Below are positions 6,001 to 62,430 of a stretch of 64,000 bases of DNA, in pieces; the stretch's first letter is position 1; each line of letters begins with the position of its first letter. Source of the stretch: Paramoeba atlantica (Eukaryota; Protista; Discosea); the NCBI GenBank assembly GCA_977017575.1, contig CDRNVI010000052.1:273346-337345 (forward strand), read 5' to 3'. Position numbers and translations under genes: made by a program. The notes beneath the pieces are model-generated. The model was given only the letters and a program-made list of their open reading frames with translations. It was not told where the DNA came from and made no database searches.

Positions 6001-9000
6001 ATCTTAATACAAAAAGTGATCTTAATACAAAAAGTGATCTTAATACAAAAAGTGATCTTAATACAAAAAGTGATCTTAATACAAAAGGTGATCTTAATAC
6101 AAAAGGTGATCTTAATACAAAAAGTGATCTTAATACAAAAAGTGATCTTAATACAAAAAGTGATCTTAATACAAAAAGTGATCTTAATACAAAAAGTGAT
6201 CTTAATACAAAAAGTGATCTCAATACAAAAAGTGTTCTTAATACAAAAAGTGATCTTAATACAAAAAGTGATCTTAATACAAAAAGTGATCTTAATACAA
6301 AAAGTGATCTTAATACAAAAAGTGATCTTAATACAAAAAGTGATCTTAATACAAAAAGTGATCTTAATACAAAAAGGGTCTTAATACAAAACGTGATCTT
6401 AATACAAAAAGTGATCTTAATACAAAAAGTGATCTTAATACAAAAAGTGATCTTAATACCAAAAGGGATCTTAATACAAAAAGTGATCTTAATACAAAAA
6501 GTGATCTTAATACAAAAAGTGATCTTAATACAAAAAGTGATCTTAATACAAAAAGTGATCTTAATACAAAAGGTGATCTTAATACAAAAGGTGATCTTAA
6601 TACAAAAAGTGATCTTAATACAAAAAGTGATCTTAATACAAAAAGTGATCTTAATACAAAAAGTGATCTTAATACAAAAAGTGATCTTAATACAAAAAGT
6701 GATCTTAATACAAAAAGTGATCTTAATACAAAAAGTGTTCTTAATACAAAAAGTGATCTTAATACAAAAAGTGATCTTAATACAAAAAGTGATCTTAATA
6801 CAAAAAGTGATCTTAATACAAAAAGTGGTCTTAATACAAAAAGTGATCTTAATACAAAAAGTGATCTTAATACAAAAAGTGATCTTAATACAAAAAGTGG
6901 TCTTAATACAAAACGTGATCCTAATACAAAAAGTGTTCTTAATGCAAAAAGTGATCTTAATACAAAAAGTGATCTTAATACAAAAAGTGTTCTTAATACA
7001 AAAAGTGATCTTAATACAAAAAGTGATCTTAATACAAAAAGTGATCTTAATACAAAAAGTGATCTTAATACAAAAAGTGATCTTGTTCCAAAAGGTGATC
7101 TTAATACAAAAAGTGATCTTAATACAAAAAGTGATCTTAATACAAAAAGTGATCTTAATACAAAAGGTGATCTTAATACAAAAAGTGATCTTAATACAAA
7201 AAGTGATCTTAATACAAAAAGTGATCTTAATACAAAAAGTGATCTTAATACAAAAAGTTATCTTAATACCAAAAGTGATCTTAAGACAAAAAGTGATCTT
7301 AATACAAAAAGTGATCTTAAGACAAAAAGTGATCTTAATACAAAAAGTGATCTTAATACAAAAAGTGATCATAATACAAAAAGTGATCTTAATACAAAAA
7401 GTGTTCTTAATACTAAAAGTGATCTTAATACAAAAAGTGATCTTAATACAAAAAGTGATCTTAATACAAAAAGTGATCTTAATACAAAAAGTGATCTTAA
7501 TACAAAAAGTGATCTTAATACAAAAAGTGATCCTAATACAAAAAGTGATCTTAATACAAAAAGTGATCTTAATACAAAAAGTGATCTTAATACAAAAAGT
7601 GATCTTAATACAAAAAGTGATCTTAATACAAAAAGTGATCTTAATACAAAAAGTGATCTTAATAAAAAAAGTGATCTTAATACAAAAAGTGATCTTAATA
7701 CAAAAAGTGATCTTAATACAAAAAGTGATCTTAATACAAAAAGTGATCTTAATACCAAAAGTGATCTTAATGCAAAAAGTGTTCTTAATACAAAAAGTGA
7801 TCTTAATACAAAAAGTGATCCTAATACAAAAAGTGATCTTAATACAAAAAGTGATCTTAATACAAAAAGTGGTCTTAATACAAAAAGTGATCTTAATACA
7901 AAAAGTGATCTTAATACAAAAAGTGATCTTAATACAAAAAGTGATCTTAATACAAAAAGTGATCTTAATACAAAAAGTGATCTTAATACAAAAAGTGATC
8001 TTAATACAAAAAGTGATCTTAATACAAAAAGTGATCTTAATACAAAAGGTGATCTTAATACAAAAAGTGATCTTAATGCAAAAAGTGATCTTAATACAAA
8101 AAGTGATTTTAATACCAAAAGTGATCTTAATGCAAAAAGTGATCTTAATACAAAAAGTGATCTTAATACAAAAAGTGATCTTAATACAAAAAGTGATCTT
8201 AATACAAAAAGTGATCTTAATACAAAAAGTGATCTTAATACAAAAAGTGATCTTAATACAAAAAGTGATCTTAATACAAAAAGTGATCTTAATACAAAAA
8301 GTGATCTTAATGCAAAAAGTGATCTTAATACAAAAAGTGATCTTAATACAAAAAGTGATCTTAATACAAAAAGTGATCTTAATACAAAAAGTGATCTTAA
8401 TACAAAAAGTGATCTTAATACAAAAAGTGATCTTAATACAAAAAGTGATCTTAATACAAAAAGTGATCTTAGTACCAAAAGTGATCTTAATCGAAAAAGT
8501 GATCTGAATACAAAAAGTGATCTTAATACAAAAAGGTGATCTTAATACAAAAAGTGATCTTAATACAAAAAGTGATCTTAATACAAAAACTGGTCTTAAT
8601 ACAAAAAGTGATCTTAATACAAAAAGTGATCTTAATACAAAAAGTGATCTTAATACAAAAGGTGATCTTAATACAAAAAGTGATCTTAATACAAAAAGTG
8701 AGCTTAATACAAAAGGTGATCTTAATACAAAAAGTGATCTTAATACAAAAAGTGATCTTAATACAAAACGTGATCTTAATACAAAAGTGATCTTAATACA
8801 AAAAGTGATCTTAATACAAAAAGTGATCCTAATACAAAAAGTGATCTGAACACAAAAAGTGATCTTAATACAAAAAGTGATCTTAATACAAAAAGTGATC
8901 TTAACAAAAAAACTGGTCTTAATACAAAAAGTGATCTTAATACAAAAAGTGATCTTAATACAAAAAGTGATCTTAATACAAAAGGTGATCTTAATACAAA

Positions 9001-12000
9001 AAGTGATCTTAATACAAAAAGTGAGCTTAATACAAAAGGTGATCTTAATACAAAAAGTGATCTTAATACAAAAAGTGATCTTAATACAAAATGTGATCTT
9101 AATACAAAAGTGATCTTAATACAAAAAGTGATCTTAATACAAAAGTGATCTTAATACAAAAAGTGATCTTAATACAAAAAGTGATCTTAATACAAAAAGT
9201 GATCCTAATACAAAAAGTGATCTGAACACAAAAAGTGATCTTAATACAAAAAGTGATCTTAATACAAAAAGTGATCTTAATACAAAAAGTGATCTTAATA
9301 CAAAAAGTGATCTTAATACAAAAAGTGTTCTTATTCCAAAAGGTGATCTTAATACAAAAAGTGATCTTAATACAAAAAGTGATCTTAATACAAAAAGTGA
9401 TCTTAATACAAAAAGTGATCTTAATACAAAAAGTGATCTTAATACAAAAAGTGATCTTAATACAAAAAGTGATCTTATTCCAAAAGGTGATCTTAATACA
9501 AAAAGTGATCTTAATACAAAAAGTGATCTTAATACAAAAAGTGATCTTAATACAAAAAGTGATCTTAATACAAAAAGTGATCTTAATACAAAAAGTGATC
9601 TTAATACAAAAAGTGATCTTAATACAAAAAGTGATCTTAATACAAAACGTGATCTTAATACAAAAAGTGATCTTAATACAAAAAGTGATCTTAATACAAA
9701 AAGTGATCTTAATACAAAAGGTGATCTTAATACAAAAAGTGATCTTAATACAAAAAGTGATCTTAATACAAAAAGTGATCTTAATACAAAAAGTGATCTT
9801 AATACAAAAAGTGATCTTAATACAAAAGGTGATCTTAATACAAAAGGTGATCTTAATACAAAAAGTGATCTTAATACAAAAAGTGATCTTAATACAAAAA
9901 GTGATCTTAATACAAAAAGTGATCTTAATACAAAAAGTGATCTTAATACAAAAAGTGATCTCAATACAAAAAGTGTTCTTAATACAAAAAGTGATCTTAA
10001 TACAAAAAGTGATCTTAATACAAAAAGTGATCTTAATACAAAAAGTGATCTTAATACAAAAAGTGATCTTAATACAAAAAGTGATCTTAATACAAAAAGT
10101 GATCTTAATACAAAAAGGGTCTTAATACAAAACGTGATCTTAATACAAAAAGTGATCTTAATACAAAAAGTGATCTTAATACAAAAAGTGATCTTAATAC
10201 CAAAAGGGATCTTAATACAAAAAGTGATCTTAATACAAAAAGTGATCTTAATACAAAAAGTGATCTTAATACAAAAAGTGATCTTAATACAAAAAGTGAT
10301 CTTAATACAAAAGGTGATCTTAATACAAAAGGTGATCTTAATACAAAAAGTGATCTTAATACAAAAAGTGATCTTAATACAAAAAGTGATCTTAATACAA
10401 AAAGTGATCTTAATACAAAAAGTGATCTTAATACAAAAAGTGATCTTAATACAAAAAGTGATCTTAATACAAAAAGTGATCTTAATACAAAAAGTGATCT
10501 TAATACAAAAAGTGTTCTTAATACAAAAAGTGATCTTAATACAAAAAGTGATCTTAATACAAAAAGTGATCTTAATACAAAAAGTGATCTTAATACAAAA
10601 AGTGGTCTTAATACAAAAAGTGATCTTAATACAAAAAGTGATCTTAATACAAAAAGTGATCTTAATACAAAAAGTGGTCTTAATACAAAACGTGATCCTA
10701 ATACAAAAAGTGTTCTTAATGCAAAAAGTGATCTTAATACAAAAAGTGATCTTAATACAAAAAGTGTTCTTAATACAAAAAGTGATCTTAATACAAAAAG
10801 TGATCTTAATACAAAAAGTGATCTTAATACAAAAAGTGATCTTAATACAAAAAGTGATCTTGTTCCAAAAGGTGATCTTAATACAAAAAGTGATCTTAAT
10901 ACAAAAAGTGATCTTAATACAAAAAGTGATCTTAATACAAAAGGTGATCTTAATACAAAAAGTGATCTTAATACAAAAAGTGATCTTAATACGAAAAGTG
11001 ATCTTAATACAAAAAGTGATCTTAATACAAAAAGTGATCTTAATACAAAACGTGATCTTATTACAAAAGGTGATCTTAATGCAAAAAGTGATCTTAATAC
11101 AAAAAGTGATCTTAATACAAAAAGTGATCTTAATACAAAAAGTGATCTTAATACAAAAAGTGATCTTAATACAAAAAGTGATCTTAATACAAAAAGTCAT
11201 CTTAATACAAAAAGTGATCTTAATACAAAAAGTGATCTTAATACAAAAAGTGATCTTAATACAAAAAGTGATCTTAATACAAAAAGTGATCTTAATACAA
11301 AAAGTGATCTTAATACAAAAAGTGATCTTAATACAAAACGTGATCTTAATACAAAAAGTGATCTTAATACAAAAAGTGATCTTAATACAAAAAGTGATCT
11401 TAATACAAAAGGTGATCTTAATACAAAAGGTGATCTTAATACAAAAAGTGATCTTAATACAAAAAGTGATCTTAATACAAAAAGTGATCTTAATAGAAAA
11501 GTGATCTTAATACAAAAAGTGATCTTAATACAAAAGTGATCTTAATACAAAAAGTGATCTGAATACAAAAAGTGATCTTAATACAAAACGTGATCTTAAT
11601 ACAAAAAGTGATCTTAATACAAAAAGTGATCTTAATACAAAAAGTGATCTTAATACAAAAAGTGATCTTAATACAAAAAGTGATCTTAATACAAAAAGTG
11701 ATCTTAATACAAAATGTGATCTTAATACAAAAAGTGATCTTAATACAAAAAGTGATCTTAATACAAAAAGTGATCTTAATACAAAACGTGATCTTAATAC
11801 AAAAAGTGATCTTAATACAAAAGGTGATCTTAATACAAAAAGTGATCTTAATACAAAAGGTGATCTTAATACAAAAGGTGATCTTAATACAAAAAGTGAT
11901 CTTAATACAAAAAGTGATCTTAATACAAAAAGTGGTCTTAATACAAAAAGTGATCTTAATACAAAAAGTGATCTTAATACAAAAAGTGTTCTTAATACAA

Positions 12001-22531: not shown

Positions 22532-24660
22532 GATTTTGTCAACATTCATTGGTAAAAGACTTAAAATCGCCATCCCGTTATACCCCTTAACGGCACTCAT
22601 AAAATATAGATGAATATTCATGTCACCCAGATAGAGCCGACAGTGGATAACGGCTCTTCGCTTTCAAACGACAAACGCGTTTCCTGCAGGGTCATTATGG
22701 TAACACCGTAACTCCGCATGAATGCCACGGCCTGGTGTAGACGATAACTGCGACGTAGAGCAAATGCGTCCGCGGACTTGCATTTCAATGTGTCCACATT
22801 TAGGGTGCTTACCACAAACCCCACTCTCATAGCTTGAATCTTGGGTCTCTGCTCTCGGGCGCCACGCCGAAAACAGGTTTTGAGCTTCCGATTGCGTCCG
22901 TGCAATGATTTTGGGAGTATTCCAACCCTGCCGCCCAGCACATGGACACGTTCATCTCTCGGTGGAAACGGGAGGAGCCGTCCATTCATCAAGTCGTACT
23001 TAACAAGCCAATTAGACCCGCCAAGCGAAGAATGAACAACCCCTTCCCAAAGTGCAATGCGTTCGCGGTAGGCCATGCGCCAAACAACAGCCACACGTTT
23101 TCCAACTCCAAAAACCATCGACATCTGCAAAAGGGCCTGCTGCCGGAGTTTTATTACACCACCCCTCTGCTTTGGTTGCAAAAAGAGGTTGCCCCGACCA
23201 CACCTGGCCGTTAGGAGTTTGTCACGAACTTCCAACAAACCATCGAACGGTCCGGAGGCCTCCGCCATTTTGTATCAACGTATTAATACAAAAAGTGATC
23301 TTAATACAAAAAGTGATGAACAACCTAGGGAGTGATAACCTCGCGTTCTGTAAGATGGACCCGCGAAACGCATTTAACAACGTAAATAAAAGACTTTCCA
23401 GAGTTATCGCCATGGGTAGAATGGTGCTCCAAATCCAATCCAAATCATTCCGGATTGCTCCGGATGTTCACTGGCAAGCCAGACCCTTCACAGACAGATT
23501 TGGAAGTTCCGAGGCCGACGTCCTCTACCAGTTTCCGCTTTTCCAAGGCGGCACCAACGTGCTGTTGCCAACACGCTGCGTCGGTGGAAGTATAGGAATA
23601 TTGCATAAGTATACGAATATTGCATAAGTATAGGAAAATTGTATAAGATACCTTCTTATATATAATCCTTCTTAAGGAAGAAGGAGGTTAGAATGGTGCT
23701 ACTCACACCCGAGCGTTCTCACCTACGGAAATCACTTCATATCATCTGCGGAAGGTGTGCAACAGGGCTACCCCCTAGGTCCACTCTTATTCTCCCTAGT
23801 CCTCTCGAACGCCACCGAACAAATAGCATCACGGGCTAACCTAGACTCGCAGCTCTTTAGTATTTGTATGACGGGATCCTTATGGGGTAGGCGGGTGAAG
23901 TCAGAAAGGCATTGGACGTGTTTTCTGAGTTCGGCCCTAAATGCGGTTTGTTCTAAAATCCAAAAAAGCCCATGTCACTGAACAATTCCCTGAAATCCCA
24001 GCGGAGAAAATCCATGTTGACGGAAACTTTGATATCCTCGGAAGTCCGATTGGATCTGCAGAGCATTGCGCGGAATTCCTTCTCTTAAACGCAATAGAAC
24101 CAGCATTTTATTATTTTTTGTGTGATTATTTTTTTTTTTGTTTTTTTTTAAGGGGGGAGAAGTATGAATCGCGGCATTGCCTCTATATTTTGACCCAGTA
24201 GACGAACCAAGTAGGTCCATTGGGGGGGTATACGAGTTGAAAACAAGCAATCAAATTAGCAATTCTTTTTGTTTCCACAGATGTACCTTTTGTTTTTTCT
24301 CAGCCCAAAACTAGCAATTTAATCTCCCCTAAGTATATACTACAAACAAGAAACAGTAAAAACTAAAACAAGCAATACAGACCCAATCCATTCGCGCGTT
24401 CCGGACCGGGTCTTTCGACCACTCCACGGCCTGACTTGTGAACCCTTCCCTTGCTATATGGGAGGGCGCAGGCGCGGGCCTGTGTCGACAGCGACACGGT
24501 CGCGAAACAGGATGCTGGCCGACGGGGAGGAGATTCACTACCCGTGTACTACCTCACTTGGGGTACCTAGCCCTCGCGGGCTAGGCGTGAGCATAGACTC
24601 TGTCGACCCGACCAGCACCCGTGGCCTATGTCACCACCATAGGATCCGTTGGGTCCGACA

Positions 24661-38917: not shown

Positions 38918-39341
38918 GGTCTTCCAGAGGAGACAACTGTTCCGAAGATCCTTTATGTAAAAAAAAAAAACGAATTCGGGCACGAAAATCGGGCCACAAA
39001 TCGGGCACGACGAACCCAGGTTAAGTGGACGAGGGAATTGTTGGGCTTCGAAAATTGCTTCCCGATAACAACTCACATTTTTATCTTGCAGGGGTTGGGC
39101 ATGGTGGAATTGTTGGGCTTCGCAAATTGCTTCCCATTAACGACTCCCATTTTTATCTTGCAGACGGGTAAACAAGGTCATGGCTTTGCATGAAAGCGGT
39201 GCGGGCGTAGTTGTTAGACGGTGGGCCTTACAACCTGCAGGTTGTGGGTTCGATTCCCGCTATCGACAAAACTCGCAACCTGGCGGCCTCACTAAAATTG
39301 TTATCTTAATAAAAATTGTTATCTTATTAAAAATTGTTATT

Positions 39342-40293
39342 GCGGTGGTTGTAAAACTACCGCTCTACACTCGATTATTGAAAAAAAAGTGAACAAAAAC
39401 AGTGAAAATATAAAGAGGAACACAGTAATATAATAGAAGAAAAAAATCTAAAAGGGGGCTCCGGTGGTCCAAAACTGAAAAAAAAATTTGAAAAAAATGG
39501 GGGGTCCATGGGGGGGGTCCATGGGGGGGGTCCAGGGGGGGGGTCCAGGGGGGGGGTCCAGGGGGGGGGGGGCATGGTCGATCAAATTTTTTCGAAAAAA
39601 TTAGTTTTCGAAAAAAAACTGCAGAAAGGGTAGCCGGGGTCTTGGCGCGCATTTTCCACCCCCCTACCCGGGGGTGACCCCCCCGCGTATCCGCAGGACG
39701 GGTCCGCCAAGTTCGGATTTTTTCGGAAAAAAATTTTTGAAAAAAAATTCAACTTGGCGAAAAAAATGACAAAAAACATATTTTTCCAAAATCGTTTCCC
39801 CTATTGTATTTTGATAGTTTGGGACCTACACTAGCTTTCTACGCAGTTGTTTTCGCAAGGTATCACTTCTTCGAACTGTGGTGCGCCCCCCAAAATGACC
39901 CATTTTTGACTAAAAAAGGTGAAAAAGTATTTTTCGGACCTAAAGGGGCATTTTTGTGTCGAAAGAATGGTATGGTTGGAGTCGTATTCTCTACCCAATA
40001 CGTTCGGTAGGCTTTCATTCATGCCTGCGAGTGATTTCCCACGCGCAAATGTCGGATTTAGTGCTCTGACAGCAAAAATACACGAAAATGACCCCATTTG
40101 TACCCGAAATTCGGCTATTTTTGGCTATAATCTTTCCGTTTTCCAGGCTAAAGTTTCTTTTTTAGGCTCTTCCTTAAACGCGGCGGTAGTTTTCAACGCG
40201 AAGCGCGCAGCATGAGTGACTTCTAAGTTGAAAGCAACCACCGCGTTTAACGAAGAGCCTAAAAAAGAAACTTTAGCCTGTAAAACGGAAAGA
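39342..40293 (+). mobile_element. Family A hairpin unit, inserted within the variant 18-bp repeat
   Basis: Same termini as the 32816 copy; foldback extended to 40131-40293; repeat units on both sides. Confidence 0.75.
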
Positions 40294-40295
40294 CT

Positions 40296-40490
40296 ATCTT
40301 AATAAAAATTGTTATCTTAATAAAAATTGTTATCTTAATAAAAATTGTTGTCTTAATAAAAATTGTTATCTTAATAAAAATTGTTGTCTTAATAAAAATT
40401 GTTATCTCAATAAAAATTGTTGTCTTAATAAAAAAAGTTGTCTTAATAAAAATTGTTATCTTAATAAAAATTGTTATCTTAATAAAAATT
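40296..40490. repeat. Variant 18-bp repeat AAAAATTGTTATCTTAAT x ~11
   Basis: Direct reading; same unit at 36443-36525 and 39295-39338. Confidence 0.95.
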
Positions 40491-42159
40491 GCGGTGGTTG
40501 TAAAACTACCGCTCTACACTCGATTATTGAAAAAAAAGTGAGCAAAAAAAGTAACGTACTAGGATAAAAGTGAACAAAAACAGTGAAAATATAAAGGGGA
40601 ACACAGTAATATAATAGAAGAAAAAAATATAAAAGGGGGCTCCGGTGGACCAAAACTGAAAAAAAAATTTGAAAAAAATGGGGGGTCCATGGGGGGGGGT
40701 CCATGGGGGGATCCAGGGGGGGGTCCAGGGGGGTCATGGTCGAGCAAATTTTTTCGAAAAAATTAGTTTTCGAAAAAAAACCGCTGAAAGGGTAGCCGGG
40801 GTCTTGGCTCGCATTTTCCACCCCCCTACCCGGGGGTGACCCCCCCGCGTATCCGCAGGACGGGTCTGCCAAGTTCGGATTTTTTTGGAAAAAATTTTTT
40901 GAAAAAAATTTCAACTTGGCGAAAAAAATGACAAAAAAAATATTTTTCCAAAATCGTTTCCCCTATTGTATTTTGAGAGTTTGGGACCTACACTAGCTTT
41001 CTACGCAGTTGTTTTCGCAAGGTATCACTTCTTCGAACTGTGGTACGCCCCCCAAAATGACCCAATTTTGACTAAAAAAGGTGAAAAAGTATTTTTCGGA
41101 CCTAAAGGGGCATTTTTGTGTCGAAAGAATGGTATGGTTGGAGTCGTATTCTCTACCCAATACGTTCGGTAGGCTTTCATTCATGCCTACTAGTGATTTC
41201 CCACGTGCAAATGTCGGATTTAGTGCTCTGAGAGCAAAAATATGCGAAAATGACCCCATTTGTACCCGAAATTCGGCTATTTTTGGCTATAATCTTTCCG
41301 TTTTCTTCAGCTTTACAGGCCAAATTTTCTTTTTCAGGCTCTTCGTTAAACGCGGCGGTAGTTTTCAACGTTGAAAAAATGTGAACAAAAACAGTGAAAA
41401 TATAAAGAGGAACACAGTAATATAATAAAGGAAAAAAATATAAAAGGGGGCTCCGGTGGTCCAAAATAGAAAAAAAAAATTGAAAAAAATGGGGGGTCCA
41501 GGGGGGGGGGTCATGGTCGAGCAAATTTTCGAAACAAAACCGCAGGAGGGGTACCGGGGTCTTGGCGCGCATTTTCCACCCCACTACCCGGGGGTGACCC
41601 CCCCGCGTATCCGCAGGACGGGTCCGCCAAGTTTAGGTTTTTTCAAAAAAAAAAATTGAGAAAAAATTCAACTTGGCGGAAAAAATGGTAAAAAAAATAT
41701 TTTTTCAATTTTTTTTTCGCTATTGTATTTTGAGAGTTTGGAACCTATACTAGCCATCTACACCGTTGTTTTCGCAAGTTACCCCATCTTCTAGCCGTGG
41801 CACGCCTCCCAAAATGGCCCATTTTTGACCAAAAATTGCGGAAAAGTAATTTTCGAACCCAAAGGGGTCTTTTTATGTCGAAAGAATGGTGTGGTTGGAG
41901 TCGTATTCTATACCCAATACGTTCAGTAGGCTTCCATTCACACCTACGAGTGATTTCTCACACGCAAATGTCAGATTTAGCGCTCTGAGAGCAAAAATAC
42001 CCAAAACTTTTACCCTAAAAATTTTACCCTAAAATCGGCTATTTTTGGCTATAATCTTTGTTTTACTTTAGCTGTCCAGGCCGAAGTTTCTTTTTTAGGC
42101 TCTTCGTTAAACGCGGTGGTAGTTTTGAACGCGAAGCGCTCAGCATGAGTGACTTCTAA
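40491..42159 (+). mobile_element. Two tandem family A units lacking the right arm of the 3' foldback; left boundary region of the Helitron
   Basis: First unit 40491-41370, second 41371-42159. The second stops at ...CATGAGTGACTTCTAAG (the hairpin loop) and runs into the gene's upstream region. Confidence 0.7.
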
Positions 42160-42288
42160 GATCCTCTAAAAAATGATCCTCTAAAATGAGATGAAAATCA
42201 CATGTTCTTATTTTTGTGCTTCGAATTTTTTTGTTCATACATTTTTTTCACTGTTTAGCGCTTTTTTATTCATACTATTATTCTTCTC

Positions 42289-45200
42289 ATGTCTTCTGAT
42301 TCGTCGTGGTCCGTGTCGTCGGCGTCGTTGGAGGTGTCGCTTGCTGGAGCCGGGGGTGGGGGAAGCCAACTGAGCTCTAACAAAGCTCTGGGCGAAGCAT
42401 ATCGCGACTGCGAATGCTGCACTTTCTTTCAAAGAAAGAAAGGAAAGAAAAGGGTGCGCATGACCCTTAATCACAGTGCTAGCAAAGCACATAAAAGCTC
42501 AGCTCAAATATACGAGCTATGGCAACAGCATGTTGCTGAAGAAGGTGAATTTTACACCTGCCGAGAATGTGCTAACGCGAACATTCGGGTGGAATTGACA
42601 GCTCCCCTGATGAAGCGGCACGTAAATGAACATTTAAAAGGGTTGCATATCATTTGTGAACCTTGTTCGTTCTTCCAAGAGCTCATGGGAAAACCCCCCG
42701 TTTTGAGCGTACAAAAGCACGACGAGCGTGTGAAACACAAGCGTGAAAAAGAGATTTTTAACGCGTGGAAAGTCCTTCAAATTGAAGGAAGCATTGTCAA
42801 TGGCTTTACATGCACGAAATGTGCCACAACACAGGGCGATCAAAACCATGAACATCGTACTTTCAAGTATGATGACATGCGCAAAAATGTTTTCGAACAT
42901 GGGCGCGGGGATCATTCCCATTGCAAAGAGTGCTCCTTCTTCGAGGAGTTGCAAGGGAAACCCCCCATAAGACGTACTCGAGAGCATCTCTCGAGTGCGA
43001 ATCACAAAACCGAGAAGGAGATGTACGACATGTGGATGGACCTTGAGGTGCAAGGTACCGTGTCTGCAGGCTTTCGGCGCACGAAATGTGCCACAGCACA
43101 GGGCGATCAAAACCCTGAACATCGTACTTTCAAGTATGATGACATGCGCAAACATGTTTTCGAACATGGGCGCGGGGATCATTCCCATTGCAAAGAGTGC
43201 TCCTTCTTCGAGGAGTTGCAAGGGAAACCCCCCATAAGACGTACTCGAGAGCATCTCTCGAGTGCGAATCACAAAACCGAGAAGGAGATGTACGACATGT
43301 GGATGGACTTTGAGGTGCAAGGTACCATGTCTGCAGGCTTTCGGTGCACAAAATGTGCAGAATCACGGGGTAAAGCAAACCCTTCGTCGTACACGTTTAT
43401 GTACTACTACATGCGCAAACATGTTTTCGAACATGGGCGCGGAGATCACGACATTTGTGAAGCATGCTCCTTTTTTTCGAGTATGCATGGACAGCGTCCT
43501 ATCTTGAAAACTCGAGAGCATATTTCGAGTATCAGCCACGAACACGAACAGCAACTGTTCGAACTATGGCACGAGCTTCCCATAGCTCACGCAAGCGCAG
43601 GGACAGAATCCGGTTACAAGTGTGTTGCGGACGCTTGTTCCGGTGAAGTGATGAGCCTCGGCGCTGCAAGAAAGCACGTCGAAAAAAAGCATATGAAAAC
43701 AAGTGAACAAAGCTGTGAAGCTTGTTCATTCTTTGATGCGGGGCGTATGCCCAAGAAGCACAATCCTGCGAAGTGCTCTGAGCACAAGCAGTGGTACGCA
43801 TTTTGGACAGAAAACGTCCTTGAAACAGAAAACATATACCAGTGCAAACTGCCTGGGTGTTCTGAAACACCTCTTGAAAAAGAGGCTATAACGAAGCATG
43901 TAGCACAACATTGCGAAGGAATGCATTTATGTATTCCTTGCAATTACTTTGCTATCTTGCAAGATTTCCCGCCAGTCATGGTGAATACTAATCACGCGAA
44001 TTCTCTGAAACATCGGGAAATGGCGTATCTACATCCGAAATGGGAGCTTCACGTAAGTTTCTCTGATGGATCGTATGTATGCGCACTGCACGCCATACGC
44101 AAACTAAGTGTCAAATCTATGATGCGACACATACTCAGTATGGGACACCCTTCACAGGTGCTCCTAACTGATATGAATGTTCCTCTGTGCGAAGTATGTA
44201 CGTATTTCGCACAGATTCAAGGAACAACGGGTATTATCCCGGCAGATGAATACCATTTGGTGTCAAGTGAGCATAAACGTTATGTTCAAACAAAAGTCGA
44301 CTGGATCGAATTTGCCCTCCACTGCGAACAGAACAAGTTCAAATGCACTTTGTGCGCTACCGAACAAATGTTCACGTTTAAGGGGCTTCAAAAGCATTTT
44401 TACCGCCATCCGCGGCATGCTGAAGCTCGGGCTTTTCGACTTCGGATCACACAAGCTGAGCGCAACAGAGCTCATGCAGTATCGCAGGATGATGAGCTGG
44501 AACGTGTGAAGCAATGCTCCACGCTAACACTCACATCTTTTCAACTGATTGAGAATATTCTCATCAATTCACACATTGTTTGTGATGAAACCCTCCAAAG
44601 CGATGGAGATAAAAGATGCTCTATTCAGAGACATCGTGATGGACATAACGTCGTTTACGTTAAAGGCAATGGCGATTCTCTCGCCATGGTATGTCTGACT
44701 AAACGACGAGTGTTCACATATAATTGCGCAGCTTCTATGGAAACACAGATAGCGGCAATTCGAACCGTCTACAATATTGGAAACATGGCTACTACGCCAG
44801 TTCCTTTAGTAGGAAACGATGAAGGTGAGCTCTCCCTGGGAGCGATAGCCTACACTATCACGCAAGACCGTGATTGGCCGAAACTGACAGAACGTGATAA
44901 ACTTTTATCACTCTGGAAGTGGCTCGAAGCTTCACCGGAAAAAGGCGAAGTGGGGGTTATACCCCTCACTTTGTATCCACAAGAAAAGCGTACCAAAGAA
45001 GCATTCACAAGGCTAGATCATCCACTAAAATCAGTAGAGATTCTCTACTTTGTGGAAAATGTATTATGTAAAACCATTAACACACGACGATTTCCTGTGA
45101 AAGTATGTCCATTCAATGAATGTGACAAGTTCACTTCAAGGAACCGTGTGGGTTTACACATATTTACATACTTGGAAACAGATGAATCATCGGGGCCCAT

Positions 45201-48200
45201 ATGGGTCCTTGTTTCCTTGAAAAAGAAGGGTGAAAAGAACGTTTATACGTTTATTACGAGTCCCTCTCTTGAAAATGAAATTGTTTCAATTTTGAATCAA
45301 GCAACTGTCACGAATGTGACGAATGCTAGCACTATTGACAGTGCAGCATATGCTATCATGCAGATGTGTGAAAATACCATCTTTCACACAAACGAAATAT
45401 GCAAAGAATCTTCAGCCAATGAACTTCGGTACTGGCTTGAACGATGTTGCATCGCGAAATGTATTGTCAATTTTGACACATACGAAGTCAATGGAGATGG
45501 CTCACGTCGAACACGTTTTGACATTGAGCGCAATCCAAAAGACGCACTAAAATACTTCTATGAGACTTCCTACATTGATCGTCTTCCTTTGGAAGATTTT
45601 TCAGTCAGTACGGAAGCTCAAGAAGAGTGCATGAAAAGGTACAAAAAGAGAATGAACGACGACCAACGTATCACAAGTTGTGATTCTTGTAAAGTTATTC
45701 TTCTCGAAAGTGACCTTCCGAATCCCGAAGCGCAACTTTGTGCAAGGGATCAAAGAATAATGGACAAAAAAGGGAGAATTCCCCGCGGTCCAGTAGAACA
45801 ACCTTCTACAAATCACCTTCCAGTACCCACGCTGGTAGAAGAGATCCTTCTTCAAAAGGTGTTTTTACACTGCACAATCATCAGTGTACATAGGAAAGGT
45901 GGCGCATATGCCGCATCCTTAAGGCCAGACACGAAGTTCACTGGACACGTGACGGCTACAGCACGCGAAACCCTTGAGCTCTTGCAACTCGAAAGAGTTC
46001 CTGATCTCGAGGGCGCGATTAAGAACATCCAAATTGTTTGGATAGCCAACGAACGGAGAACGAAACGTAGTCAAAGACTATGTTCTGCACAGCTGAGTGG
46101 CATATTCGGCGTGAAATCAGAGACCCTGAACACCTGGGTACACTTCCTCTGTGAGCATAACCACGTGTATGCTCAACTGAAAGAGGAAGGAAAGATCAAC
46201 GTTGTTACCGAACAACGTTGTAGAGACGTTGTCTCACATCTTTGGGATAGATCTGTTTCCCAGGAGGGTGAAAACGCCATCAACAGTATGGTCACCCAAG
46301 CAGTGGCTTCCGATACGTTACATCGCGATCCTCGCGGTGAGATCACACGATCTTTTGTAACTGATCACAGCCCTGTAAGTAATGCGCCGGCGGGTGCGCA
46401 AATTACGCATGCCGTGGCGATGCAACTGAAACAAAAAGAAGGTTTACTCAATGAGTATACCGACATGGAAAACATCTTGCTCGGAGCATTTCCGACGCTG
46501 ATGCAAAAGTACCCTTTTAAGGGTTCAACGTTTGAACTATATGAAATCAAGGAAATTCTAGAGCAATCGGATTCCCGATTTGCAAAGAATGCTGGATTCA
46601 TATTTTACTGCTACGATGTGCTTCGGCGCCGTGCAGTCTCATCAGCAGTAGTGCAAAATCTGAAGTATAACAAAGATATGCACAGAAGCCTCATGAATTT
46701 TTGCAATGATGATGCTTTCTATCACATTGTGCAACAGGCTATAAGGAACCCAAACAGTTCCGAGGCGAAACTTCTGGAAACAAAGTTTCTGCCATTTGTG
46801 CAAGTATGCGCAAAAAAGATACCCTTTTCGCCAGCAAAGCGAAAGGCATCACAAGGCCAGATCTACGCCTTATACAGGCGATACGGACTGCCAAGTTACT
46901 GGATCACAGTGAGTCCAAACATGAACGATAACGTTCTAGCTCTAAGAATCATCACAAATGATGAGAGCGAAAAAATGCAGGAAATGCGGGCCACCTTCTC
47001 AAGCGATCTGAGCTTGTGCAAGGGAATCCTGTCAGATCCACTAGCATTTTCGAACGGCAAATCCGTACTCTTCTTACCGAATTGTACGGAATGTCGAATG
47101 TAGATGAGGTAAAGAAGGAACGTGACGTTCTTGAAGGCCTCTTTGGTCGCCCTCGAGCATTTTTTGGTGTTGTAGAATGCCAGAAAAGAGGTGCGCTACA
47201 CTTTCATAGTGTGCTATGGACGAATCTTAGTCCACATTACGTCTCCGAATTAATTCACATTGTGAAGGAGCACGATGGTCTCGCGAAGTCTTTGGGTACG
47301 ACGATGCGCGCTGATCTGCCCGAGTGGGCGCAAAGGATCAGTAAGGAGCTTTACGGCCATGCAACGCTCGACTACTCAAAGATGTATCGCGGAGGTCTAC
47401 ATATCATTCCTGATGAAAAGGATGATTATTTCAGGGAACATGTGGCCAAATGTGCTGTTGATGTTCAGCAGCATGTTGGTCACAGACCCATGTGTTTCAA
47501 AATGAAAGGAAACATTGGCAAGAACAAATGCCGATATGGCATTCCATCCGTACTTCATGAAAATGAAACGGAAGTTAGAGAGGTTGAGGTTCAGATGGAT
47601 GAATCCGGACAACCGGAATTCCGGCTCAAGGCTCCAACACGGCCGATTAAAAATGATACCATTTGGCCAGTACTTGATGAAAGGTCTCTGATTGTGCTTC
47701 TGCGCAATAACCAGGACCCGACACAACACACTAAACGGGGATCCATCACCGTTCCGTACAATGAAACACTCACTGCTTGCGTAAGATGCAATACATGTGT
47801 AGTTTTCATTGGGAGCGAAGGTCCAGGCATAAAAATTATGCAATTTCTCATAAAATATATGAGCAAGGACATTGGTCCACCTGTGTACATTGTACCAGCA
47901 CTTCGCGCAGCCAATGACCACCTTCAAATGGGTCTGAATTCAGAGAACAGAGTGCAAACTGACATTCCGATGGCACGCTTAGTTCTACAGAAATTGTCGA
48001 ACATGACACATCGAAAGATAGAAGTTTCAATCGAAATGGCAACTGCCTTTTGTCTCGGCCAATCCTCCGAGTATATGAGCCATAACTTCACATGGATCAA
48101 TATGAACCGTGTAATGAAGTTCCTGGCAAATATCCCAAGTGAGTCTGATCACAGAGATCCAGAAATCAGTGACGAGGATTCGTCACAAGACTCTGATATG

Positions 48201-50651
48201 GAGTTCGACAACGGTATCTTAGAGGCTCCTCTAATGATCACCGAACATGATTGTGCAGTTCTTGCAACACTCCATGTGCGTTACATGCACAGGGGCGAAG
48301 ATCTTCAAGACCTTGACCTGTATTCCTATGCAGGCATTGTCAGCGTAAAGAAGAAAAGAGCTGAACTAGCTCAAGAAGAGCCCGATCATGATTCAGATTT
48401 TGAGTCAGGGACAAATCGAAGACGTCGTCGCGGACGTCGTGCTAATGGGAGATACGCCTTTGAGGACATTGAAGGCCTCCCGGAATTTGAGCCTGGAGAT
48501 ATTGTTGAGCAACAGTTGCGCTCTTTGCACACTGTGCCAGCTATACCAGGTTTTACCATATTGAGTTCTTCAAAAGAACCTGGGGCACGAGCTCGAAGCC
48601 ATCTTCGAGTAGCGAAACACATGGTGGCATTGTTTTCCCCATGGACGAAAGGCTCACCGAGCCATGAAATGACCCTAGAAGGGTTTGAAAAGCTTCTCAA
48701 TGAAGCGAAAATAAATACGCCTGGAAAGTATGACATAATGTGCAACTTTCTTCGGCTTTTACATGCTTCGAAGAATACAGAGAACGCGGCAGATTTGTAT
48801 CGACGCAAAGATGCTTGCACTCTGGAAGAAGCAAGATTAGCACGCAACATTGCGTACGAAAATGAGCTTGAAGTGCGAGAGGTTGAAGCTCATCTTCAAG
48901 ATGCTCTTGAAGCACAGCAGAACACTGCAGTGGTTAATGAAGAGCGATTGGTTCAGCAGAATGCATACTGCGAACTACAAACGCGAGCTTTAACGGCCGC
49001 GTTGGGAGGTTCTACTGAGAACTCCTCTGAAGAAAATGTTGATCTTGCATCGACAATGACAAGGACGAGGTCCAATATTTCAGTCATAAATGCGCGAGAG
49101 CGCTATGCTGAAATGATCCAAAACGAACGATTTGCAACTTCGGCTCAATCTGAGCCAAGTGCACCAGTGGACAGAGCTCATTTTAATGAGGATCGTCCAC
49201 TGGCTCGCAGTAATCAATACGAAGAGATTACGTTCGATCGCAGCTACATATTGCGCGAAGACAACAATTCCATTGAACTGAACCAAGCACAGAAACAGTG
49301 CGTAAATCAAATTGAAGATTTACTAAACGGGAAACTAGACCCCGAGCGGAAATGTATGTTTCTGCTCGGTGGCCCCGGAACCGGGAAAAGTCTAGTTTCC
49401 CGTTTCATAATGCAAGAACTGGGAAGCCAATGTATTGCAATGGCGCCCACTGGGATCGCCGCATCAGTACTGCACTGTTGCACAATACACGCTTCCCTCT
49501 GCATACCGATAGGGGCTACTGCAAGAAATTTGAAACATCTTTCAAGCAGTAGCCTTCTACCATACCAACAAAGGTATGAGAAATGTCGATTAATCATAGT
49601 CGACGAAGTGTCAATGATCAGCAAGTGTTTCCTTGCCTGTATCAACACTAGACTGCAGCAAATCAAAGGAAATGAGCAGCTTCCCTATGGAGGCATCAAC
49701 ATGCTCTTTGTTGGAGATTTTTATCAGCTGAGACCAGTACAAGGAGCGTCTCTTACCATAGAAGATAGCTCTCTTGGTAATAATCCCATTTTTGAGAATA
49801 TTTTTCAAGTCTCGTATGTGTTTGAACTCAAACAGCAAATGCGAGCACGACAAGATACTGTATTTTCAGATATCTTGCGTCTTCTTCGAAAAGCTCCCAA
49901 TGAGGGGTTGAAGAAGTTCATCCAATTGGTAAAACCTCTTACCTCTGAGGACCAAGAAAAGTTCCGCAATGCAATTGTCATTGTTGGAACAAATATTGAA
50001 CGGCACAAGATTAATGTCGCAATGGCAAGAAATTTTGCCAGACGTCACAATTGCCCATTGTTCGCATGGACAGGCGATAACGTCCAAGGTAAACTCATTG
50101 ACACACACCCTGAAGCATTTTCTGTATTTGTAAAAGGAGCACCCGGTGTAATCACCGAGAACATTGCTCCTTATACAATGAAAATTGCGAATGGGACAGT
50201 GATTGAAATGAGAGACCTTGTGTCAGACGATTTGTCATACGACACTATTGATGGTGTTCGTTATCTACGAAAAGCCCCTTCTTTTATGCAATGCATTGAG
50301 AAGGGGTCAGGTGTAGAATTTTACGCCAAAAAGGCGCAGCACCATGATAAGGCTTCCCAAGGAAACTTTCAAGTGGAATTGGGATTTGCCTATACGTATC
50401 ACAAAGTACAAGGTATCACCGTGAAGAAAGGTGTTATTCTTGACTTGAATGATAAGGCGTGGTCCAAGAGACCGGAACTCGCCAAGCTCACAGTAGCAAT
50501 ATCCAGGGCACAATGCCTCGATGATATTCGAGTGCTCCCTGGCATGGGCACAGATCGCCCAGGAACACACCTGACTTCAGGTTACCATAGGCCTAAATTT
50601 CCGGCCATGGAAAAAGCAAATCGGCTTACCGATTTGACTTATCAATTCTAA
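42289..50651 (+). CDS. Helitron-type Rep/PIF1 helicase transposase (~2,790 codons) with N-terminal Zn-finger repeats; one frameshift near 47010-47045
   Basis: Repeated CxxC..H..H modules; RFAKNAGFIFYCYD and LPSYWITVSPN (Helitron N-terminal motifs); HUH motif VECQKRGALHFHSVLW; KYMSK; PIF1 motifs GGPGTGKS, IIVDEVSMIS, GGINMLFVGDFYQLRPV, QQMRA, FAYTYHKVQG, VAISRA. The two ORFs overlap (47016-47103) and one base would join them. Confidence 0.92.
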
Positions 50652-51143
50652 GAAATTAGATTGAAACGATCTTCTTAGGAAGACCTCTCTAGGGGGGAAG
50701 CACGCTTGATACCGGTCACAAGCCCGGCGTCTTCAGCTTCGGCAGAAGAAGTGCGAGTGACCCCAACGCTCACGCGCCCTCTACCAAAAAAAGATGTCTC
50801 CATCATAGCTGCAGAATTACGCTCCGTCAAAATTGCTTTCAATTTTTTTTATCGAAATTTCAGAAGCTTGTTTGCTTCAAAAGCACCCACCGCGGCAGCG
50901 GGCCTGTACCCTCTCGAAGGGCGCTCCGGGCGGGCCCTTCAAAAAAAGATATCAGAAGCTTGTTTCCTTCAAAATTTCATGTCACGAGGTAAAGCACCCC
51001 CCGCGGCAGCGGGTCTGCACCCTCTCGAAGGGCCCTCCGGGCAGGCCCTTCAAAAACAAGACTTCTACGTTCATGTATTGCTTTTTAAGTTGAATGTTTC
51101 TAGACTCAGCTTGATTTTTTTAAAAACTTTCTTTGAATTTACT

Positions 51144-51485
51144 ATGGCCTCGGCGGAGAATCAATCAACCAATGGTAACGACATTTCCGACAAGGAAAGA
51201 GATACAAAGCGCAAAAGAGATGATTACTTAGAATCTCTACACGTTTTGCGCTCTGCGCGCGAAGAGCGTGACGAGCGCTCAATCACAATAGAACACCTTC
51301 CCTCCTCTACGACTAAAGAAGACCTTACCAAGCATTACGCTTCGTATGGTGAAATCGATTGCATAACAATCGTATCAAAAAAAGGACTGGCGCACGTGTG
51401 TTTTAGCACTACGGAAGAAGCGAAGCGCGCATCGAGCGTTTACTTCAAAGGGAAAAAGAAGAGAAACAGATACTTAAATTTCTGA
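51144..51485 (+). CDS. Small RRM-domain protein (113 aa)
   Basis: SITIEHLPSSTTKEDLTKHYASYGEIDCITIVSKKGLAHVCFSTTEEAKRA fits the RNP2/RNP1 RRM pattern. The ATG follows a T-rich tract; the upstream TTG-started extension in the ORF track is doubtful. Confidence 0.65.
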   Translation: MASAENQSTNGNDISDKERDTKRKRDDYLESLHVLRSAREERDERSITIEHLPSSTTKEDLTKHYASYGEIDCITIVSKKGLAHVCFSTTEEAKRASSVYFKGKKKRNRYLNF

Positions 51486-52109
51486 ATAAGTGTGTAAGAA
51501 GACGTTTGGAAGTGAAAGTTGGTTTAAAATTTTGAATTCATGATTCGAAGGTTGGAGAAGGAAATAAAACACTTTTCTTTCGAGAAATTTTCGGCTTAAA
51601 TTCGTCCACAGCACCGTTTTTTTACGATTCATCGCATCAAAGTTTTTCTGTGGTTTTACTTTGTGTCTCGGAAACCCTCTGTAAGTATTTGTAACTTCGC
51701 ATTTTCTAAACTCAAATAAATACAATTGAAACTAAATTTGTTAAAAAAATGTTTACATTTACATAGCAGATCTACAGTTGCAGTCATCACTTCTTCTATT
51801 TTTAGCCTGATCATTCAACAAATATGCTTTTGATGACTGAATTAGTGCATATCCAACTTACTGTCAGAAAAGCGTTCCGACATGGCATTAACTGCACCCC
51901 TGGCGTAAACCAAATGAATCAAAACGAAGAAGTAAACCCACGAAGTAAATCCCCCCCCCTTCAAAAGCCGGGGTGAATTCAAGGGCCTTTCAAAAAAAGA
52001 GGTCTCCACCCTGCTTCGTTCAAAATCGTGCGAACCGAAGGAAAACACATGTGAGCGGAAATATGCAAAAACAAACCTATTTTTGCCCAACAATCTATGG
52101 GGGGGGCAT

Positions 52110-52658
52110 ACCCTACCCGGGGGTGACCCCCCCTCGTATCCGCAAGACGGGTCCGTCAAGTTCCGATTTTTTCGGAAAAAAATTTTGAAAAAATTTTCAA
52201 CTTGACGAAAAAATTGGTAAAAAGAATATTTTTCCAAATTTGTTTTGCCTATTGTATTTTTATAGTTCGTGGCCTATTCTAGCTTTTTACGTCATTGGTT
52301 TTGCGAGGTGTCGCTTCTTGAAGCCGTGGTACGCCTCCCAAAATGTCCCATTTTTGATCAAAAAATGCGAAAAAGTAATTTTTGGACACCAAGAGGTCTT
52401 TTTGAGTCGTACGAATCGTGTGGTTGGAGTCGCATTCTCGACTTTAGTGCTCTATATACAAAAATCACCCCATTTTTACCAAAACATCGGCTATTTTTGG
52501 CTCAAATTCTTCCGTTTTCTTCCGCGTCCCTGGCCAATTTTCTTTTTTAGGCTCTTCTTTAAACGCGGCGGTAGTTTTCAACGCGAATAGCGCAGCATGA
52601 GTGACTTCTAAGTTGAAAGCAACCACCGCGTTTAACGAAGAGCCTAAAAAAGAAAATT
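52110..52658 (+). mobile_element. 3' half of a family A unit with complete foldback; putative 3' terminus of the Helitron
   Basis: Direct repeat of ~41580-42159, plus GTTGAAAGCAACCACCGCGTTTAACGAAGAGCC. Confidence 0.7.
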
Positions 52659-52659
52659 A

Positions 52660-55600
52660 TAACAATAACAATAAAATCAAGCAATCCACGCCCAATCCAT
52701 TCGCGCGTTCCGGGCCGGGTCTTTCGACCTCTCCACGGCCTGACTTGTGAACCCTTCCCTTGCTATATGGGAGGGCGCAGGCGCGGGCCTGTGTCGACAG
52801 CGACACGGTCGCGAAACAGGATGCTGGTCGACGGGGAGGAGATTCACTTCCCGTGTACCTCACTTGGGGTACCTAGCCCTCGCGGGCTAGGCGTGAGCAT
52901 AGACTCTGTCGACTCGACCAACATCCAGGCCAGAAGTTTTCCTTACTCTTCTTTGCCATACCCCACAAGTGCAGGGCCTGTGTTCGCCGAGGGGAGGCGA
53001 AGAACGAGCATACGCGCCTGGGAGCGCATGATGGTGACGTTCAGACTTGTTAGTATTTGCTGTAACGCCCCCCTTGCGAAAGTGTTCCTCCTGAGGTCGC
53101 AGCTTGGCCTTTCGAGACTTCCCGCAAGACCGATATAGCGGCCGGACTCCAGCATCCGTATGTTTCGACAGCCATAGCTGTGAACTTGGTCTTCGCTTCT
53201 TCAGCTTCCTCCCGTTGCTTCCGCTTGTGTTCGACGGCGTACCTCTCGGCGAATGACCCGGCTGCCACCATGTTAGCATCACGGACCAGGTCCGTATACT
53301 TTTGTTGCTGAACATGTGTGACAGCGAAATCAAGGACGAGGGCCTGACCGAGACCACCGTTCCGGACATAGACATCTGCGGGTCGCGTGAGGGCGCCGCC
53401 CGGACCCCTGTTTCCCAGAGAGACTTCTCTCTGTGGGCTCAACCCGGCCTTGCTGCATTCAGCGGAGAACTGTTCCGCTAGGGCGTTGTGCCTTGTAATG
53501 ATTCCGTGGCCGCACTTGCAGGCTAGCGCATGGTCCACCCCAGGGCCGAGTGGGAGGCGACAATTCGGAATCGGGCAGTTGTGACCTTGAGGGTATATAC
53601 TCCCCCCGAGCCACCAACGAATCAGAGTCCGAAATTCAGTAGGGGTGTAGGCATGACCGCAGAGAGTTGAGGGAACCGTGAAGGCCCAGTTGGATGCCCC
53701 GTCGCCCGTTTGTGAGAGCCACCTAGCCCGAGTGCGGGGATCCGCTCTTGCGTAATCTTCCTCAAAGTCTCTCGCTGAAATCGCATGACTGAGATCGCGT
53801 TGTCGAAGAATCGCCAAATCTTGAGAAAGGTCAATATCGGGGGAGGGCGAGAAGGGGCATCTCTTTATGACGGAGTCCTTGTGGATTTTCCCGGTAGATT
53901 TGTCCACCATACACCCCCCTACACGCCGGTTAATGTCCTCCACGGCGTAAGAAAAGCCCTCAGCCTCATTTGCATCCCATCGATCCTTGTCGGAAGCGAA
54001 AGCTACTGAAGCTACGTACGCTGAGGTGGCATGCATTTCCGCTGAGCGAAGGCCGAGACCGCCGAACTGTTTATTTCTTTGTGCTTGTCGTCGAGCCATG
54101 TCACTCAGTGGGCGACAAAACGTTTCAACCGTACGCTGAACGGCGTTGTCGAGTCTGCGACATAAGTCCAGTAGTTCGTCCGTCGGCGTCGTGCGAAGGG
54201 AGTAAACCATCTGGCAAAACCCTGTGCACTGTCGGATGAGAGAGAAAGCGATCTGAGGGTCCTCCAGTTTCTCGATCGCTTCAAGGGATTCCTCCTCCTG
54301 GGAAATCGCGCTGTCGAGGAGGAACTGACGGCTGTACGTCGTAGATCCGATGGGGCTTCCCAAGATGCTCAGATTACCTTCCATGTTGATGTTGAGCCCG
54401 GGGATGTCAGGAAAGTGGGTAGTTTGATGAGATGAGGAAGGGTGTGCGATTATTTCGCACTTGGACGGATTGAGGTTCAGACCCCACTTTGGCCCTCCAA
54501 TTTCGATGATATCTAGTGCGTGACGTAAATCAGAAGCCTGGCCTGCAAGGACGCCATCATCAAGGTACCAGAGATTGAGATGAAGATCAGGAGCTCCGGC
54601 CTTAATTTCTGCGGCCATTTCTCTCATGACGAGCGAGAACAAAAGGGGTCAGAGCGGGTCTCCTTGTTGTACGCCTTCAGAGGATTGAACTACACGTGCG
54701 CCGAATGTCAGGTTACTGTCCGAACTGTTGCACCATTCCACGAACGGGCTCAACTCAGGGAAATGATGCCGTGTCAAGGCCATAAAGCTATTTCTTGAAA
54801 TGTGATTGAAAGCGTTGCGAAGGTCAACCTTGCATAGCACAAAATCCTCGTTATTGATGTGGTGCGCAACCAGGCGCCTGCAAATGTGGATAACGCGTTC
54901 GGCTCCTTCGGGCGTCGCCACTCCATATTGTTGATCTTTGAAGAGCGTTCTGGATTTAGCCTTTGCAGACAGACATCCTATCTTGCTCGCTAGTCGGCGG
55001 AAGGTTTCCCCTGCGGCAATGGGGTGGACATCACCCTGACCCTTGTGTAAAGCACATAAGCGTCCGCCGGCGAAGCAGTGTTGGACTTCAAGTGGTACTT
55101 TGCCCGCTAGCATATGACTAATAAGTTTCGTGAGTATACCGAGCGGATCTGTCCTGGCGTCGTGATGGAATTGCACTGCTACTTGTAGGTGCTCAGGCCG
55201 AAGTCCGAGAGCTCCCCCTGAGGAACCTCGGTGAAAGCTGGAAGGCGCCGTAATGATGTCCTCTTCGGTTGCGGTGATCGGTTTAATATCCAAAGAAGGC
55301 GTGGCAATCGGACTTGGACCCAGAAGTCGAGACGGGTGTTTCGCCTGGAGCTTTTGATAAGTCGTGTCATCGTTTGGGGCAAGTGGTTCGGATGTCAACG
55401 CAGTCATTGCGCGGGAAAGTTCACCATCTCGCACGAGGCGTACTGCTCGGAGCGCAGCTTTCTGATCCTCCTCTTCAATGCTCTGAGCCTGTGGAGAACT
55501 TTTCCGCTTACGCTTCAGGCTTGACAACGCCTCGTTCCAAAGTGGTAGAAATTCCTTGTTCTTCCATCTGGAAAGGCCTTTGCGGACGTGGGAGGCGTAT

Positions 55601-62216: not shown

Positions 62217-62430
62217 AAGTTGAACCCATTTTTCTCTTGAACCCATTTTTAAAAAATGTCAGTGAGGCCTCAAAAAAAAATTTACGCCTCAGACTAAAAT
62301 TCCAGAAATACGCATCATCAACGTGCCGTATGCATTATCAACGTGCCGGATTTATGCATTATCAATGTGCCTCAATTATGCATCATAAATGTGCCGTATG
62401 CAATATCAATGTGCCGCTCAGCATGCAATT

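Follow-up and report, generated by a model that had tools for sequence, protein, structure and literature searches.

We analysed a 64,000-nucleotide stretch of contig C52 (positions 273346-337345; hereafter the window, with C-numbers denoting contigs of the same 45.7-Mb eukaryotic assembly). Positions 40488-52658 of the window are one mobile element of about 12 kb, a Helitron-type rolling-circle transposon. Self-comparison and alignment resolved its layout, in order, as two partial hairpin-bearing units (A2 and A3), a leader, a gene for a Rep/helicase protein, an accessory open reading frame (ORF) with an RRM domain, the tail of a further unit (Ax) and a last unit (A4). Copies of the element that carry the gene are called masters below, and the abundant non-autonomous units of the A2 type, about 0.93 kb long and ending in a hairpin, are called family A. 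A segment of these units, R, lies as a direct repeat on both sides of the gene (R1 in A3, R2 in A4).

Gene module and copies of the element

Both coding components described by an earlier reading of the window made without database searches (the sequence-only reading), a Rep/PIF1 gene and an RRM ORF, were recovered by profile search. The gene product matched the Pfam families DUF6570, Helitron_like_N and PIF1 (2.7e-25), with Helitron_like_N matched on either side of a frame break (2.5e-08 and 7.7e-07). An HFH motif lies in the Rep part and a Walker A motif, GGPGTGKS, in the helicase, while the N-terminal part is a zinc-finger-like array that includes 267-bp tandem repeats (42812-43448). The predicted product carries an HUH Rep upstream of a PIF1-like SF1 helicase in one protein, the arrangement by which Helitrons are recognised, and no endonuclease family was found among the Pfam matches of the element's proteins.

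The frame break reflects the loss of one base at 46992/3, where eight other copies each have one more base; a single missing base had been correctly proposed for this gene, but was placed at 47010-47045. For the C43, C41 and C47 copies, interior sequence was assessed via six-frame matches rather than base by base, and by this measure the C43 copy has a single uninterrupted frame of 2975 amino acids (aa) and the C41 copy a nearly intact one. Together with the lost base, a 32-bp insertion at 40538-40569 in A2 and a 163-bp deletion make up the three private lesions of the window copy. The 32-bp insertion was considered as a polarity marker and set aside as uninformative, because it is private to this copy.

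Upstream of the gene, the junction between A3 and the leader is kept in young masters and in older lineages. The pyrimidine tract and AG of the leader would suit a spliced-leader acceptor in a trans-splicing host. Downstream, the RRM ORF is intact in at least nine master copies, at 97-100% aa identity, and is a long-standing component of the family, since relatives at 50% aa identity adjoin diverged masters (C62:24875-25180 and C50:74620-74925). Its product may be a single-strand-binding accessory protein, by analogy with the role proposed for RPA-like proteins in plant Helitrons.

Genome searches used the A3-to-gene junction and the 3' region as queries, and recovered copies that a search with the gene had missed. 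Collinear alignment with the fetched ends of the C43, C41 and C47 copies showed that the element ends claimed at 40491 and 52658 are correct to within 3 bp: these copies start at window position 40487/8, stop at 52649-52661 and then run into unrelated flanks. Across 11 copies the 5' terminus is constant and the adjoining flanks differ. Identical ends with unrelated flanks at C43, C41, C47 and C52 show that the composite moves as a single unit. A segmental duplication or assembly artefact behind the shared layout was ruled out, because flanks are unrelated at four loci. No target-site duplication was visible in the flanks of the C43, C41 and C47 copies, and no empty master site was recovered, the C47 flanks being rearranged pieces of older masters and the C43 flanks having no usable paralogue.

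The sequence-only reading had proposed examining other full copies for both R segments; the refuting case that it named, gene copies without flanking R, was not encountered. Any copy retaining an end also retains that end's R segment, and the repeats belong to the element because other copies keep R on both sides. The junction of the R1 hairpin loop with the leader was found at eight loci and in short derivatives besides; it is present at C52, C43, C41, C38 and C47 and in three older lineages (leader 92-94% identical, R 84-90% identical). R2 lies downstream of the 3' untranslated region of the gene at at least 13 loci. On C38, two deletion derivatives stand in tandem; they share the 5' layout of the element, and the deletion joins 46602 to 52512. 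Upstream of the older masters at C19 and C43:166k, satellites and a unique stretch of about 150 bp replace the 5' piece of the unit, and represent either a different 5' end or an insertion. In two older masters (L055:1180-1420 and L056:830-980) the A3-type R is immediately preceded by a satellite of about 20 bp (unit close to TATGCATTATCAATGTGC), which in the window also immediately precedes a copy of family A (62297-62429).

Unit anatomy of the element ends

The direct repeats reported around the gene are real. R1 (41584-42160) and R2 (52111-52612) match in two blocks each (41584-41909 and 42022-42160 against 52113-52438 and 52474-52612; 81-83% identity, E about 1e-87), and A3 and A4 are 80-83% identical over aligned columns. 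The outline of the layout given by the sequence-only reading also holds, apart from its first component: what had been taken for the 5' end of a family A unit is a nearly whole unit with its own R, so that the element holds three copies of R and not two (Table 1).

Table 1. Features of the element and its upstream neighbourhood, in window positions.
Feature	Position	Strand	Description
5' terminus	40488-40513	+	ATT, then a mini-hairpin; fold -8.0 kcal/mol, z = -4.65
A2	40488-41376	+	Nearly whole family-A-type unit; own R at 40824-41370; ends immediately behind the left hairpin arm
A3	41377-42160	+	Unit of another subfamily; first ~42 bp gone; ends at the last base of the hairpin loop; contains R1
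Leader	42161-42288	+	128 bp from the A3 hairpin loop to the ATG; pyrimidine-rich, with AG shortly before the start codon
Rep/helicase gene	42289-50651	+	Two overlapping frames, 42289-47103 and 47016-50651
RRM ORF	51144-51485	+	Accessory, 113 aa; Pfam RRM_1
Ax remnant	52040-52094	+	Tail of a fourth unit, from alignment with the C43 copy
A4	52094-52658	+	Last unit, third subfamily; contains R2 and the only intact hairpin (52536-52582 / 52612-52658)
A1	39339-40297	+	Free complete family A unit just upstream, outside the master; hairpin arms 40127-40197 / 40227-40297
18-bp satellite	40295-40491	+	10.9 copies between A1 and the master; local flank outside the element

The two extremes of the element are intact. 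At the 5' terminus, the halves of the mini-hairpin are complementary to the cores of both arms of the 3' hairpin, giving asymmetric inverted ends in which 5' GCGGTGGTTG is complementary to the core of the right arm. The complete 3' foldback described earlier is present as the terminal hairpin of A4 (-43.8 kcal/mol, z = -9.2), its 3' end being ragged between copies. The free unit A1, which has at least 60 full-length copies elsewhere at 93-98% identity, ends in a hairpin of -45.2 kcal/mol (z = -9.3).

Between these extremes, the ends of A2, A3 and Ax fold no better than shuffled sequence. A2 has neither hairpin loop nor right arm, and A3 has no right arm (z = -0.7 for its end). At the A2-A3 and Ax-A4 junctions the left arm runs straight into an internal position of the next unit, and each of the three internal junctions has lost a right arm. 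The internal terminators are therefore disabled, and one intact 5' terminus and one intact 3' hairpin remain at the extremes, which is the organisation of a compound Helitron. The Ax-A4 junction is best read from other copies, in which, at window position 52094/5, Ax breaks off midway through its left arm and is joined directly to an internal 5' position of A4. Missing from the window copy are the 163 bp that follow the Ax remnant, comprising the rest of the Ax left arm and the 5' piece of A4, whereas a segment of 163-170 bp before R2 is kept in all six of the other copies that have the region (C109, C20, C21, C43, C41 and C47). Some units carry two or three tandem copies of a 38-bp 5' terminus, consisting of the mini-hairpin and about 16 bp (L019:3222-3340, L021:3093-3210 and, on the minus strand, L015 near 709), which gives them several candidate start sites.

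The units at the three positions also have different relatives. A maximum-likelihood tree built from 46 R cores places R1 and R2 in different subfamilies and not as sisters. Units from the A4 position form one clade (SH-aLRT 100) within a group that includes complete free units, those from the A3 position cluster with two other free units (98), and those from the A2 position fall inside family A. Each free A3-like or A4-like unit is a complete element of 0.9 kb, with a 5' terminus of its own and a full hairpin. These units retain about 72-86 bp that the A4 units of young masters have lost, a segment that the older C21 master still has.

Proposed assembly of the composite element

We favour, at a probability of roughly 0.7, the reading that this is an autonomous, Helitron2-like transposon of the Helitron type with composite ends, which are fused head-to-tail units, and that it is moved whole by terminator bypass. 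This compound-Helitron reading is based on the form of the junctions, the lost right arms, the head-to-tail joining of masters to family A units, the arrays formed by family A itself and the literature on hairpin loss and terminator bypass. It takes as observed the anatomy of the element, the conservation of its ends, the placement of its units in subfamilies and the failure of the internal hairpins to fold, and from these we infer an order of events and a read-through mechanism. Of the two origins put forward by the sequence-only reading, one agrees with this anatomy: tandem units enclosing a gene module, with mobilisation through end bypass.

The gene module (the leader, the gene for a zinc-finger/Rep/PIF1-helicase protein of about 2,800 aa and the RRM ORF) would have lain inside a former head-to-tail array of non-autonomous hairpin units, each of about 0.9 kb and drawn from different subfamilies. 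Three junction deletions would then each have taken the right arm of an internal 3' hairpin. The deletion at the A2-A3 junction would also have removed the A2 loop and the first ~42 bp of A3, that at the A3-leader junction the A3 right arm, and that at the Ax-A4 junction the rest of the Ax hairpin together with the first ~85 bp of A4, leaving one 5' terminus (40488) and one foldable terminator (52536-52658). During transposition, Rep would nick at the 5' terminus and the helicase would run 5' to 3', reading through the three crippled terminators. Transfer would stop at the first intact hairpin, so that the whole 12 kb would move as one unit. Given such a compound origin, R1 and R2 would be paralogues, the bodies of two separate units, and would not have been made as repeats at integration. 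The one Helitron that has been examined at the bench, Helraiser, terminates at its 3' hairpin, and when this is lost, read-through to the next downstream end follows (PMC4778049); tandem Helitron arrays have likewise been ascribed to terminator bypass (PMC4067079).

Several points weigh against this account. The order of events is reconstructed and was not observed, and neither an array-stage ancestor nor a master with a unit-free 5' end was found among the copies examined. The 128-bp leader shows no terminus-like sequence that would mark the original 5' end of the gene module. Master A2 keeps an ancestral-looking 10-bp segment that is absent from family A, and could therefore descend from a founder of family A instead of having been captured. 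The free A3-like and A4-like units were fetched by their match to R1 or R2, and as such are a non-random sample. Lastly, the argument for read-through at crippled hairpins is an analogy: Helraiser, on which it draws, belongs to Helitron1 and has a far shorter hairpin.

The best-surviving alternative, which we nonetheless consider improbable, places the master first: an ancestral element with R on both sides of the gene would have arisen by internal duplication of its terminal region, and the unit subfamilies would be its successive internal-deletion derivatives. Non-autonomous Helitrons commonly arise by internal deletion, and such derivatives are present here (L052 and C38). The junction of R1 with the leader is older than the split of the master lineages, and master A2 has the ancestral state of the 10-bp indel. 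However, the A2-A3 and Ax-A4 junctions look like deleted junctions between head-to-tail units, and free units of the A3-like and A4-like kinds fall outside the clades of the masters and preserve sequence that is gone from young masters. A master-first history also requires that four partial units from at least three subfamilies arose within one element.

Somewhat less probable again is that units inserted singly into or beside master ends, the family targeting existing termini, and were then trimmed by deletions. Insertion beside resident Helitrons is documented (PMC4778049, PMC4067079), and in this genome units and masters often adjoin exactly end to end, masters being joined head-to-tail to family A units in this way at C41, C21, C20 and C109; family A itself forms head-to-tail arrays. 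Nested insertion differs from the compound reading in array formation only, and needs the same three right-arm deletions and the same read-through. Between single insertions and rolling-circle concatemers as the source of the array, the data at hand fit either alike.

Returning to the compound reading, the element can be set beside several known systems. Its end structure would assign it to the Helitron2 type, with asymmetric terminal inverted repeats, palindromes at both ends and no endonuclease. Like Helitron2 elements it has a single Rep/PIF1-helicase ORF without an endonuclease domain among its Pfam matches, and a 5' mini-hairpin, a long 3' hairpin and a 5' end complementary to the arm cores (PMC4067079); its tandem arrays are frequent, and arrays are reported to be commoner for Helitron2 (PMC12001565). 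Unlike Helitron2, it has a very long, ragged 3' hairpin (arms of 47-71 nt), a giant N-terminal zinc-finger array and an accessory RRM ORF. Compound Helitrons such as HelibatN539, and the Helraiser hairpin deletion, offer a second parallel: DNA lying between the 5' end of one element and the 3' end of a second is mobilised, and loss of the terminator hairpin allows read-through (PMC4224331, PMC4778049). In those cases, however, the captured DNA is not, as here, the transposase gene itself. The present element further differs in having three dead terminators in series, from different subfamilies, and in that the composite is the standard master of its family, in multiple lineages. A further parallel is the Xenopus Helitron2 Heli2Xen, which has homologous repeats at both master ends shared with non-autonomous partners, in the form of 166-bp minisatellite arrays at both ends of the autonomous copy (PMC12001565); the repeats described here are instead partial units of 0.55-0.9 kb, single per position and 17-20% diverged.

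The present analysis adds the four-unit anatomy of the master ends, the subfamily origins of the units and a negative test for solo products, described below. Under the compound reading, the element is a natural example of the rebuilding of rolling-circle transposon ends, in which three serial terminators lost the same half of the hairpin and the product became the family's standard master. The pattern supports the hairpin as a stop signal, and would show that the ends of an autonomous element can be taken over from its own passengers. More speculatively, and in our view with little likelihood, end shuffling could be a regular part of the life cycle of the family, hairpin-centred deletions in head-to-tail arrays repeatedly fusing neighbours. 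If so, the transposase gene would repeatedly take on whichever 5' unit is most successful at the time, most recently A2, and leave dead terminators behind. On this view, the bodies of the stacked units might in addition serve as extra transposase-binding or read-through-promoting sequence.

Family A, short derivatives and genomic surroundings

The other origin put forward by the sequence-only reading was that the direct repeats behave like long terminal repeats (LTRs) and that family A is their solo recombination product, a deletion between the R copies giving exactly a family A unit. On the layout established here, a deletion between R1 and R2 would instead give a 1.7-kb dimer with an A3/A4 chimera. 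Dimers are not shed, because the A2-A3 junction string occurs at four loci only, all of them masters.

We scored R in six bins against master A2, A3 and A4. All examined units of family A score as A2-type throughout the six bins, with 92-100% identity to A2 versus 70-91% to A3 or A4, and no A2/A3-to-A4 mosaic was seen in a non-exhaustive sample of free units (0/29). Master A2, A3 and A4 and the A4-like free units share a 10-bp segment, immediately preceding the left arm, that family A lacks. Genome-wide, the family-A-type string across this deletion occurs 378 times and the string with the 10 bp 65 times, the exact master form of the latter being confined to four masters.

The short derivatives that were read arose by deletions outside R. 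Besides the C38 copies, these include L052 (on C47), made up of a separate 5' terminus, a unit of the A3 type, 108 bp of leader and a 3' hairpin, leader base 108 being joined to the hairpin at a run of T. A2 appears to be a late addition to the master, since L052 carries an A3-type unit with its own 5' terminus on the same leader and has no A2. The 5' piece of L052 also contains an insertion of about 320 bp (L052:248-585; C47:174648-174985) that is flanked by a 17-bp direct duplication (ATGGTCGAGCAAATTTT) and resembles a different transposon family that makes target-site duplications. A pair of loci on C91 and C47 was considered as a possible master and solo pair, and was rejected: the two share a 3' flank, but their 5' flanks, unit types and hairpin types differ.

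Taken together, it is very unlikely that the direct repeats are made or homogenised as a pair and shed family A as solo products by unequal recombination, even though R lies on both sides of the gene in all copies keeping their ends and the first ~880 bp of the master are family-A-type, because R1 and R2 differ far more from each other than does the same unit between the window and C43 copies (99.2% identity for A3, 99.8% for A4), are not sisters in the tree and have yielded no mosaics, and because the derived 10-bp deletion of family A is absent from all master units. In LTR elements the two repeats would be mutually closest and diverge only with the age of the copy, and R1 and R2 do not behave in this way. 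Family A as a solo recombination product is thus not supported, nor is LTR-like behaviour of a Helitron; family A could still have arisen once from a master, as an A2/A4 crossover confined to the left arm of the hairpin would yield a near family A unit. The likeness to LTR retrotransposons is superficial, and is limited to long direct repeats that enclose coding sequence, accompanied by abundant short relatives. Unlike theirs, the repeats here are non-identical at insertion, non-sister and without solo-type mosaics. The element also encodes an HUH Rep/helicase, and its flanks show no evident target-site duplication.

Dimers of units seem to be amplified as blocks in two arrays. Behind the C21 master (L033, C21:734001-744000), a five-unit array at 1154-4871 alternates in the pattern a-b-a-b, units 2 and 4 being identical and units 1 and 3 nearly so. 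At C32:34626-39868, a period of 1,875 bp is repeated at least three times.

The window master sits among other repeats nested together, not at a simple target. Its 5' flank is an 18-bp satellite of a short interspersed element, which is missing from the 5' flanks of the C43, C41 and C47 masters. Its 3' flank (52661-52926) is 93% identical to 24352-24620, part of a CRE-type retrotransposon copy at 24.1-28.5 kb. The kinetoplastid-type spliced-leader core (CAGTTTCTGTACC) occurs four times in the window (18313, 28442, 57761 and 61553) versus 0.09 expected by chance. Taken as a lead only, the motif makes the host look kinetoplastid-like; in published surveys, kinetoplastids are reported to lack Helitron transposases (PMC8788227, PMC12278014). 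Elsewhere in the window, positions 1-12000 form a block of about 12 kb with 23% G+C and a strong AT skew of +0.27 to +0.29, which looks like a giant satellite.

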